A stretch of 64,000 bases of DNA. Source: Chrysemys picta bellii (lineage: Eukaryota). The translations under genes and the position numbers were made by a program. Position 1 is the first letter of the stretch. Each line of letters begins with the position of its first letter. Of the stretch, positions 5,771-8,700 are shown one piece after another. Location: NCBI RefSeq assembly GCF_011386835.1, contig NC_088802.1, positions 13,516,001 through 13,580,000 of the forward strand. The letters run 5' to 3'. The notes beneath the pieces are model-generated. The model worked only from the letters and a program-made list of their open reading frames with translations. It had not been told where the DNA came from and searched no databases.

Positions 5771-8700
5771 TCAAGGTCCCGCTGTTTTCTGTGTCGCTGA
5801 AGTGTGAGCTCGGATTGAATCTTTTCCCGCAGTAAAGCTATTCCTAGGGTTGCTCTCACCCTTGTGGGTTTTCCGATGTTTAGTGAGGTTTGAGCTCTTA
5901 CTGAAGCTTTTCCCACAAGCAAGGCATTCATGAGGTTTATAGCCCGTGTGGATTCTCTGATGTAAGATGAGGTTTGATCTGTGCATGAAACTTTTCCCAC
6001 AGTCGAGGCATTTATAGGGTCTTTCTCCCGTGTGGCTCGCCTGGTGTCTAATAAGAGATGATCTGTGTGGGAAACTTTTCCCACAGTCCAAGCACTTATG
6101 GGGTCTCTCGCCTGTGTGGGTTGCCTGATGTGTAATAAGGGCTGATCTCCGTGTGAAATTTTTCCCACACTCCAAGCACTTATGGGGTCTCTCTCCTGTG
6201 TGGATTGTCTGATGTCTATTACGGGCCGATCTGTGTGTGAAACTTTTCCCACAGTCCAAGCACTTATAGGGTTTCTCTCCTGTGTGGATTCTCTGATGTG
6301 TAACAAGGCCTGATCTCTGTGTGAAACTTTTCCCACAATCGAGGCATTTATAGGGTCTTTCTCCCCTCTGGATTCTCCAGTGTTCAGTAAGGTCTGATTT
6401 GTGGCTGAAACTTTCCCCACAGTCCAGGCATTTATAGGGTCTCTCTCTTGTGTGGATTTGCCGATGCTTAGTAAGGTTTGAGCGGTTATTGAAGCTTTTC
6501 CCACAGTTCAAGCATTTATAGGGCTTCTCTCCTGTGTGGATTGTCTGATGTGATATAAGGTCTGTTTTCTGAATGAAACTTTTCCCACAGTGCAGGCACT
6601 GATGAGGTTTATCTCCAGTATGAATCCTCTGATGTCTAATAAGGTGTGAGCTCTCAGAGAAACTTTTCCCACAGTGGGGGCATTTATAGGGTCTCTCCCC
6701 TGTGTGGGTCCTCCAATGTCCAATGAGGTGTGAGCTACGGCTAAAACTTTTCCCGCAGTCCAGGCACTTATGGGGTTTCTCTCCAGTATGGATTGTTTGA
6801 TGTGTAACAAGATGTGATCTCAGAATGAATTGTTCCCCACACTGGAGGCAGTAGTAGGGTTTCCCTTCCTGGGGATTCATCTGCTGGGCTGTGGGATCCT
6901 TGTCTCCTCCCCCATATATAATAGATTTGTCCACTTTCTTCTTTGGGTGGTTTTCCAGCAGCCTCTCTGACCTGTGCCAATTTCCCCAGGCTTCTTCCTG
7001 TTCCAAGCACTGGGATAAATTCCCTTCAGCTCTTTCCACAAAGGTCCCCTGTGGTTCCACTTCCCCAGGAACTTCCTCATGATGACTCCCCTCCTCCTTC
7101 TCACTCACTCTCTCATCACCTGCTGGGAGAGAGAGAGAGAGACACTCCAGGAGAAAGAGGAATAGCTCAAAGGGAAAACCCAACACACTAACGCTGTGAA
7201 GACTGAGCAATTTGATTCTGCCTCCACTTCCCACCCGAACACTCACAGGGAAGGAAAATTGGGAAGGAAACTCCTGCAGCTAACAGGACGGGTGGAAAGC
7301 CGTGAGTGATTTCTGCCGACTAGAGTCCTGTCCTGACTGAGACGAGGCAGAACTAAGGGCGCTCGCTCATCGCACATTTTGGGGTTTCTCAACTTTTTCC
7401 TTTACTCGACAGATTGTTTCTCTGTCAGTTTCACTGAGTCCTCACCTGTGCGGGTGCCTCTTGGTATCTCTCTTTCCTCACAGGCCTGGAGTTCGGAGAT
7501 CCATGGCTCTTCTCCTCGCTCCAGCCGGGCGATCAGGTCAGGTTTGGGAATGGGAAATCCTGCGCAGGGGGTGAAATCAGCCTAGATCAGGGTGCATGGA
7601 GTATTGCGGGAGTGTGTGTCACAAAGGGCATTCTGTGAATTGAACCTGTTCCCGTGCTGTGCTGAGAGAATTTGGAATCCATGGAGATGGGAACATAGCT
7701 GAGCCCCCTTGGGAGAGGCAGATGTCTGGGGAGGTGGGGAGAATTGTTACGCCCTCACTAGCAGTTCCCAGGATCTGTGCACTTTGGGGGCCTTGCTGAT
7801 GCACACACAGCTCTGGAGTTAAATCCCTGCAAAGCTCAGAGCCCTCCCCATGGCTGGTGTTATTTCCAAGGAGGGAGGTGACCAGGAATTCTGTGAGCAA
7901 CCGAGAAACAACACAGACAGGATAATACACAGCGTCTATCCCCTTGAAAGCTGGGGGGTGGGTGGGGATGGTTTAGCACATCCATTAGGTTTTGGCACCC
8001 TGGTCCCACTGCAGGGGGTTTGAAGATGCAAGTTTCTCTCACACGGCAGCTGTGGATTATGGAACCCATTCTCCTTCAATCTAACTGACCAGGGAAGAAC
8101 CTGACCAGAGTCAGAAATGCAGTCCCAAAACTTTCTAATAACTGAGGGCACAGGAATCCCTTACCCAGTGAGGTCACAGTTTTGTAATTCTCCCGCATGA
8201 CATCCCTGTAGAGGGTTCTCTGAGCGGGGTCCAGCAGAGCCCCCTGCCCCTGGGTGAAATACACAGCCACCTCCTCAAAGGTCACCGGCATCTGAAACAA
8301 CAAGAGTCCCCCAGCCACAATCCCTCTAGTCAGACAGGAAAGGAAGAAGAAAAAATAAACATCTCGGAAGCTCTGGGAGGACAACAGTAGCAGAATCCCA
8401 CCCTCACCCTGCTCAGAGCAACCAGGTGGCTTCAGGGGGTGGGAAGAAACTGAGAGCTCCTTGTCCCTCCCAGCAGATGGAGGAGGGCAGGGTCTACTCA
8501 TTTACCATCCACCTGCTAACCCGCAGTTGATACGGGAAGCAGAGCTCTGAGCTGGGGACAGGAATCCTGACAGCTTCCCTTTGTATTTCACAGTAGCCTC
8601 TGGCTAATGGGTTCAAGCTCAAGCACTGGGACTCTGGTCAGTTTTCCCAGCCCTGCTCAACCCCCCAACGGGCCTGTTTGGAAAATCAGGCCCAGGTTGA

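Follow-up and report, generated by a model that had tools for sequence, protein, structure and literature searches.

GQG in place of EEW: a turtle variant of the KRAB-A box in a zinc-finger gene cluster of Chrysemys picta bellii

Introduction

Standard KRAB boxes are the KAP1-binding ones of zinc-finger proteins such as ZNF93, ZNF10 and ZNF568, in which the glutamate at position 17 (ZNF93 numbering, used throughout) forms a salt bridge with K296 of TRIM28 (KAP1) and a hydrogen bond with Q292, and the neighboring tryptophan, W18, lies outside the KAP1 interface and is dispensable for the fold, leaving its role unexplained (Stoll 2022, PMC9753469). In mammals, the KRAB-B box that follows potentiates KAP1 binding (Tycko 2020). 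Variant KRABs, and non-mammalian KRABs deviating at KAP1-critical residues, are already known (Liu 2014; Helleboid 2019; Tycko 2020): some human variant KRABs (vKRABs) do not bind KAP1 and some even activate (Helleboid 2019, PMC6745500; Tycko 2020), the transition from standard to variant has taken place several times in mammals, and a KRAB of the coelacanth binds the KAP1 of that species but not the human one (Helleboid 2019, PMC6745500). KAP1 binding, it has also been argued, may be largely absent among KRAB-ZNFs outside mammals (Liu 2014, PMC3971581). Against this background I examine a stretch of 64,000 nucleotides from Chrysemys picta bellii (NCBI RefSeq assembly GCF_011386835.1, contig NC_088802.1, positions 13,516,001 to 13,580,000 of the forward strand; hereafter the window), which holds four paralogous KRAB(A+B)-C2H2 zinc-finger genes in tandem, three of them intact (genes 1, 3 and 4) and carrying G-Q-G where the standard KRAB-A box carries E-E-W. 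An initial annotation of this DNA had singled these boxes out as a candidate for an undescribed system. That wording is too strong: the domain is known, and what is undescribed is a variant class of it. GQG is best read as the ordinary KRAB in an old and constrained form specific to turtles.

GQG at the EEW site

Genes 1, 3 and 4 assemble into intact open reading frames of 538, 628 and 668 amino acids with no internal stops and with AG/GT at every internal junction, and each joins a KRAB-A exon, a canonical KRAB-B exon and a single finger exon in one frame, as a KRAB zinc-finger protein (KZFP) should. The start-codon exon of each reads MAV[L/M]EP[D/A]Q; these exons and the KRAB-B exons were located with a near-identical Chrysemys RefSeq model (P0087) as the guide. 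The three KRAB-A exons are each 127 nt long, which is the usual length in mammals too, and are flanked by TTTCAG and GTAAGG. Their products score 75.5, 76.1 and 74.3 bits against the Pfam KRAB profile (PF01352, cut-off 20.4), covering profile positions 1-41/42, and phmmer aligns them without gaps to the solved structures of ZNF568 (7w5q), ZNF93 (7z36) and 1v65, placing G-Q-G directly under the E-E-W of the first two.

The change is therefore E16G, E17Q and W18G, and genes 1, 3 and 4 all lack the triplet that marks a standard KAP1-binding KRAB-A, namely the glutamate of the salt bridge and the tryptophan beside it. All three copies use the codons GGG CAG GGG, each one base away from GAG GAG TGG, and together with the codon before them they form a perfect hexamer repeat, CAGGGG CAGGGG, in genes 1 and 3. 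A tblastn search across the window showed no KRAB-A besides these three, so the initial annotation was right that every intact KRAB-A here carries GQG, and right about the codons; translations, Pfam and phmmer alignments agree on the placement. A second canonical KRAB exon, as in the dual-KRAB models of Pelodiscus and lizards, was sought in the same way and none was found in the window. The sameness of the motif in three copies does not count as three independent events, because tandem paralogs share descent; what argues that GQG is not a product of chance is its recurrence in over 100 different KRAB boxes spread over many turtle species.

Two further departures, EV for DV and MQE or MRE for MLE, had been listed as part of the same anomaly. 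Both are present, and neither belongs to it: within each of the GQG, EEW, GEW and EEG classes most turtle boxes have E at position 8 and Q at position 34, and so do most other sauropsid KRABs that keep EEW, so I have set them aside. A missing leucine was already recorded in lizards (Liu 2014, PMC3971581), and L34 is not among the 12 residues required in the ZNF10 scan (Tycko 2020; Stoll 2022, PMC9753469).

A turtle-wide class beside ordinary KRABs

A profile of the three exons, compared with 1.84 billion cluster representatives, matched 7518 KRAB proteins at E values up to 0.001, and I counted triplets in the best 150 of these 7518 representatives, which contain 232 KRAB stretches. GQG is found in 91 of the 232, EEW in 68, GEW in 13, AEW in 10, and EEG and GQW in four each, with a few each of EQG, RQG, AQG, VQG and GQA. 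Sampling was by similarity, cluster look-ups and a named search, so these counts are not a census, and birds never came up. The carriers of GQG come from about 20 named turtle species, the motif being identical in independent assemblies: sea turtles of the Cheloniidae and Dermochelyidae (Caretta, Chelonia, Natator, Lepidochelys, Eretmochelys, Dermochelys), Chelydridae (Chelydra, Macrochelys), Emydidae, Testudinidae and Geoemydidae (Chrysemys, Emys, Malaclemys, Terrapene, Gopherus, Chelonoidis, Pangshura), Trionychia (Pelodiscus, Carettochelys) and the pleurodire Pelusios castaneus. Among the named proteins matched in this similarity-based sample, none outside turtles carries GQG. Of the 38 non-motif positions, the closest alligator boxes share 33 with the GQG consensus, and their triplet is VEW, or in another gene GEW; geckos read GEW; and lacertids, Pogona and Rhineura read GQW, GQA or RQW, often in the first of two KRABs. 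A homologue search with the GQW box of Podarcis returned the query alone.

The split between pleurodires and cryptodires is roughly 200 million years (My) old or more, and because both suborders carry GQG, the triplet should predate crown turtles and have arisen on the turtle stem lineage. The class is thus a real turtle-wide subfamily, probably more than 200 My old, and from its distribution it appears to be a large, turtle-restricted subfamily of KRAB-A standing beside ordinary EEW KRABs. The initial annotation had supposed an expanded, conserved and lineage-wide family of non-canonical boxes, and this much the survey upholds.

The same turtles also possess many REEW, SEEEW, KEEW and KGEW boxes, together with an abundant class without tryptophan, REEG. 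With the four motif columns excluded, the GQG consensus differs from turtle KGEW at one of 37 positions and from REEW at two, a shared scaffold that argues for a shared partner. Because the intermediates GEW, GQW and EQG are all present in turtle proteins, a stepwise path is plausible, and GQG probably arose through the single-base steps EEW to GEW to GQW to GQG. A KRAB-A tree has 38 informative columns and resolves no single GQG clade, and clustering in it is strong: with the motif masked, the GQ[GA] label takes 17 changes, where 1000 shuffles gave a mean of 59 and a minimum of 48, which is why I treat the class as coherent.

REEG (W18 to G, with E17 kept; for example P0002, P0162, P0168, P0224-P0227 and P0240-P0252) seems to have lost the invariant tryptophan independently. 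It is carried by Gopherus, Caretta, Chrysemys, Chelydra, Macrochelys, Trachemys, Dermochelys, Natator, Lepidochelys and Pangshura, and none was seen in the Trionychia or Pleurodira of this sample.

Many of the database carriers of GQG are fragmentary or fused gene models. Some models hold two KRAB-A boxes (P0010 and P0206 from Pelodiscus; P0021, P0032, P0035 and P0039 from squamates), of which the first is a variant, reading GQG in the softshell models and GQW or RQW in the lizard ones, and the second a canonical EEW-type box that precedes the fingers; these could be a real architecture or fused models. In others (P0083, P0126, P0230, P0232-P0235), a GQG, GQW or GQA exon is joined to RING/B-box or PRY (TRIM-like) parts, or the model is named PPP1R10-like. 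The KRAB-TRIM-like fusions are probably annotation artefacts, and hint that such clusters adjoin TRIM and MHC-region-type genes in turtles.

Constraint and predicted fold

The KRAB-A exon is under purifying selection. Among the window paralogs, 8-13 of its 127 sites differ (6-10%), as against 17-24% in the 400 bp of upstream intron, and the Nei-Gojobori ratios of nonsynonymous to synonymous change (dN/dS) are 0.11-0.47, which with 8-13 substitutions are small counts and a weak basis, clear as their direction is. Neutral evolution (dN/dS near 1), which the initial annotation had named as grounds for abandoning its proposal, is thereby made very unlikely, the exon being two to three times less diverged than the introns. 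Outside the triplet, the turtle GQG box keeps V9, V11 (I/V), F13, L21, Y29, V32, M33, E35 and N36, and has V and L at aliphatic positions 40 and 43, so that besides E17 and W18, nine of the ten residues required for silencing are identical or equivalent and the tenth is a conservative D8E. The remaining silencing and interface residues of a standard KRAB-A are therefore in place, D8E aside. The KAP1-contact positions hardly vary across 112 distinct GQ[GA] boxes (mean entropy 0.23 bit, versus 0.43 for non-contact positions), figures inflated by the choice of hits for their similarity to the query.

An AlphaFold2 model of the gene-1-type KRAB-AB, built on a 45-sequence alignment, has a mean predicted local distance difference test score of 81, and 90-94 over the A-box. 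An exhaustive aligner run against 48,161 Protein Data Bank (PDB) representatives gave as best match the KAP1-bound KRAB of ZNF93 (7z36_D), with a root-mean-square deviation of 1.1 A over 42 of 42 residues, 45% identity and a Z of 4.9, just 4.9 because the domain is tiny. The model thus adopts, as a prediction, the fold of a KAP1-bound KRAB, and Gly-X-Gly is in this model compatible with the KAP1-bound conformation. Foldseek against the PDB gave chance-level rows (E above 1, mostly botulinum light chains), which I disregarded.

Does GQG still recruit TRIM28?

The reading I favor, at about even confidence, is that the GQG KRAB still docks on TRIM28 through a preserved hydrophobic face with a changed polar rim. 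The finger array would bind DNA and the KRAB would dock on the TRIM28 coiled coil through the kept hydrophobic face, without the E17-K296 salt bridge and without W18, making the protein a TRIM28 adaptor, of altered affinity or fitted to turtle TRIM28, and not a new effector system. I favor it because the whole KAP1 surface has been kept for an estimated >200 My, because EEW boxes of the same genomes have almost the same scaffold, and because coelacanth KRABs set the precedent of non-canonical-looking boxes that bind their own KAP1. Several points weigh against it. In human cells, any substitution of E17 abolishes silencing by the ZNF10 KRAB in a deep mutational scan (Tycko 2020), mutation of K296 in KAP1 abolishes repression, and the highly conserved W18 is required for silencing (Stoll 2022, PMC9753469), and since both E17 and W18 are required, GQG should be inactive toward a mammal-like TRIM28. 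The predicted fold, for its part, is not evidence of TRIM28 binding, and the small substitution counts and inflated conservation figures given above tell on the same side.

Loss of TRIM28 recruitment is possible and a strong rival, although I would put it well short of an even chance. The GQG KRABs would then be a turtle class of variant KRABs that, in the manner of the human vKRABs, do without TRIM28 and either activate, compete or insulate where they sit on DNA or work with other cofactors. The 12 residues that silencing requires in the ZNF10 scan include E17 and W18, E17 tolerating no substitution at all, and both the repeated shifts from standard to variant KRAB in mammals and the case made by Liu 2014 (PMC3971581) for non-mammalian KRAB-ZNFs largely without KAP1 binding speak for such a loss. 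Human vKRABs, however, diverge widely, whereas the remaining KAP1-contact residues of the turtle boxes, the KAP1-specific polar contacts E35 and N36 among them, hardly vary between the turtle families sampled, an estimated span of >200 My; the box outside the motif is almost identical to turtle EEW-type boxes; and the KRAB-B has been kept.

An unlikely alternative pairs the GQG (and perhaps the EEG) KRABs with a co-evolved partner, either a changed turtle TRIM28 surface that takes both EEW and GQG, or a turtle TRIM28-like paralog devoted to boxes without tryptophan. Co-evolution of KRAB and KAP1 is documented in the coelacanth (Helleboid 2019, PMC6745500), and the persistence of two large classes without tryptophan, GQG and EEG, suggests that W18 is dispensable in turtles; but EEW KRABs are abundant in the same genomes, so that the surface reading E17 has presumably been kept. 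A wholesale change of turtle TRIM28, which the initial annotation had entertained, is likewise unlikely, with many EEW and GEW KRABs retained alongside. That the exon is a relic, whether decaying or neutral, or else an artefact of assembly or annotation, is very improbable: one of the four window paralogs is a pseudogene and many database carriers are fragmentary or fused, yet there are three intact open reading frames with canonical splice sites, an exon two to three times less diverged than the introns with dN/dS below 0.5, and an identical motif in independent assemblies of about 20 species.

The cluster

The four paralogs are about 75-90% identical where they align, in exons, introns and upstream sequence alike, and their features are collected in Table 1. 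In gene 2, a deletion of about 600 bp took out the KRAB-A exon, KRAB-B is interrupted by a stop (LE*GEEPW), and fingers are missing from a truncated array. KRAB-A and KRAB-B are separated by an intron of about 6.4 kb in gene 4 (54508-60876) and of about 0.6 kb in genes 1 and 3, implying insertions in gene 4. The finger exon of all three intact genes begins at tandem NAGNAG acceptors (7119-7122, 36682-36685, 61352-61355), and two Chrysemys RefSeq isoforms one alanine apart (..TRT-GDER.. and ..TRT-AGDER..) fit the two acceptors. Fourteen sequencing runs, presumed to be of RNA, contain 28-41% of the sequence words that make up 5771-8291.

Table 1. Exons of the three intact genes, and the pseudogene, in the window
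Feature	Position	Strand	Remarks
Gene 1 start-codon exon, coding part	8817..8840	-	MAVLEPDQ; GT donor
Gene 1 KRAB-A exon	8165..8291	-	127 nt; motif T-Q-G-Q-G, M-R-E
Gene 1 KRAB-B exon	7446..7559	-	114 nt; 100% identical to Chrysemys RefSeq model P0087
Gene 1 zinc-finger exon	5771..7122	-	11 C2H2 fingers; NAGNAG acceptor 7122/7119
Gene 2, pseudogene paralog	18036..19446	-	KRAB-A exon deleted; KRAB-B exon (19333-19446) with in-frame stop
Gene 3 start-codon exon, coding part	38384..38407	-	MAVMEPAQ
Gene 3 KRAB-A exon	37717..37843	-	motif T-Q-G-Q-G, M-Q-E
Gene 3 KRAB-B exon	37042..37155	-	
Gene 3 zinc-finger exon	35064..36685	-	14 C2H2 fingers
Gene 4 start-codon exon, coding part	53804..53827	+	MAVMEPAQ
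Gene 4 KRAB-A exon	54381..54507	+	motif T-K-G-Q-G, M-Q-E
Gene 4 KRAB-B exon	60877..60990	+	
Gene 4 zinc-finger exon	61352..63093	+	16 C2H2 fingers

Between genes 3 and 4 lies a retroelement insertion whose 473-aa open reading frame (47706-49127, minus strand) has a reverse-transcriptase domain (Pfam RVT_1, E 1.5e-13). Each paralog has upstream of it a GC-rich block (73% GC; 51713-52198, 40098-40584, 11870-12234 and 25610-25789) that is 95-96.5% identical among genes 1, 3 and 4 (90% for gene 2), versus about 80-85% in the adjoining non-coding sequence. It has no coding potential and no Rfam match, and a scan of the whole window with Rfam gave no match either; the block may be a tract of gene conversion, or else a constrained promoter or 5' exon that the paralogs have in common.

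Significance and comparison with known systems

E17 and W18 are among the most conserved residues of KRAB, both indispensable for silencing in human cells, and turtles have given up W18 in two large and old classes, GQG and EEG, and E17 as well in GQG, on an otherwise unchanged scaffold, providing a clean comparative system and a natural test of the requirement for these two residues. The questions this addresses are the role of W18, the universality of the E17-K296 salt bridge, and the co-evolution of KRAB and TRIM28 outside mammals, on which, to my knowledge, almost nothing has been tested. A broader claim, tentative and somewhat short of an even chance, is that a large share of turtle KZFPs (GQG, perhaps EEG) bypass the canonical E17/W18 contact with TRIM28, through a co-evolved TRIM28 or paralog or as a TRIM28-independent class kept for >200 My; if true, they would serve as a natural experiment on W18, whose necessity is unexplained. 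For annotation, tallying turtle "KRAB-ZNF repressors" by domain matches may merge functionally different classes. The GQG sequences themselves sit in public gene predictions as generic "zinc finger protein N-like" entries, and no description of the turtle GQG or EEG class was found in the literature searched (subscription papers, such as Imbeault 2017, fell outside the search).

Compared with the standard KAP1-binding KRAB-A/B of ZNF93, ZNF10 and ZNF568 (7z36, 7w5q), the turtle box belongs to the same Pfam family at 75 bits, has the same layout of a 127-nt A-box exon, then a B-box exon and one finger exon, shares the hydrophobic KAP1-contact residues and E35 and N36, and is predicted to fold onto 7z36_D at 1.1 A; it differs in having neither the E17-K296 salt bridge nor the invariant tryptophan, and in D8 to E and L34 to Q/R, both common to EEW-type KRABs of sauropsids. 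Nearer at hand, the turtle EEG class is without W18 like GQG but keeps E17, and the first KRABs of squamates with GQW or GQA share E17Q with GQG, those with GQW keeping W18; both amount to parts of the GQG change, in related lineages. The squamate boxes probably arose independently of turtle GQG, to judge from a motif-masked tree of weak resolution in which they group with other squamate KRABs. Coelacanth KRABs similarly look incapable of binding KAP1 by mammalian rules, yet bind the KAP1 of their own species (Helleboid 2019, PMC6745500); that is another lineage with other substitutions, and binding was assayed there, whereas the turtle box is known from sequence. The human vKRABs (the ZNF282/777/783 group, ZNF496, ZNF597 and the KRAB_2 of ZFP28; Helleboid 2019, PMC6745500; Tycko 2020) likewise deviate at KAP1-critical positions and have long been kept, but they are diverged along the whole box and few per genome, whereas the turtle box lies by sequence near the sauropsid consensus, changed in the EEW triplet alone and highly amplified.

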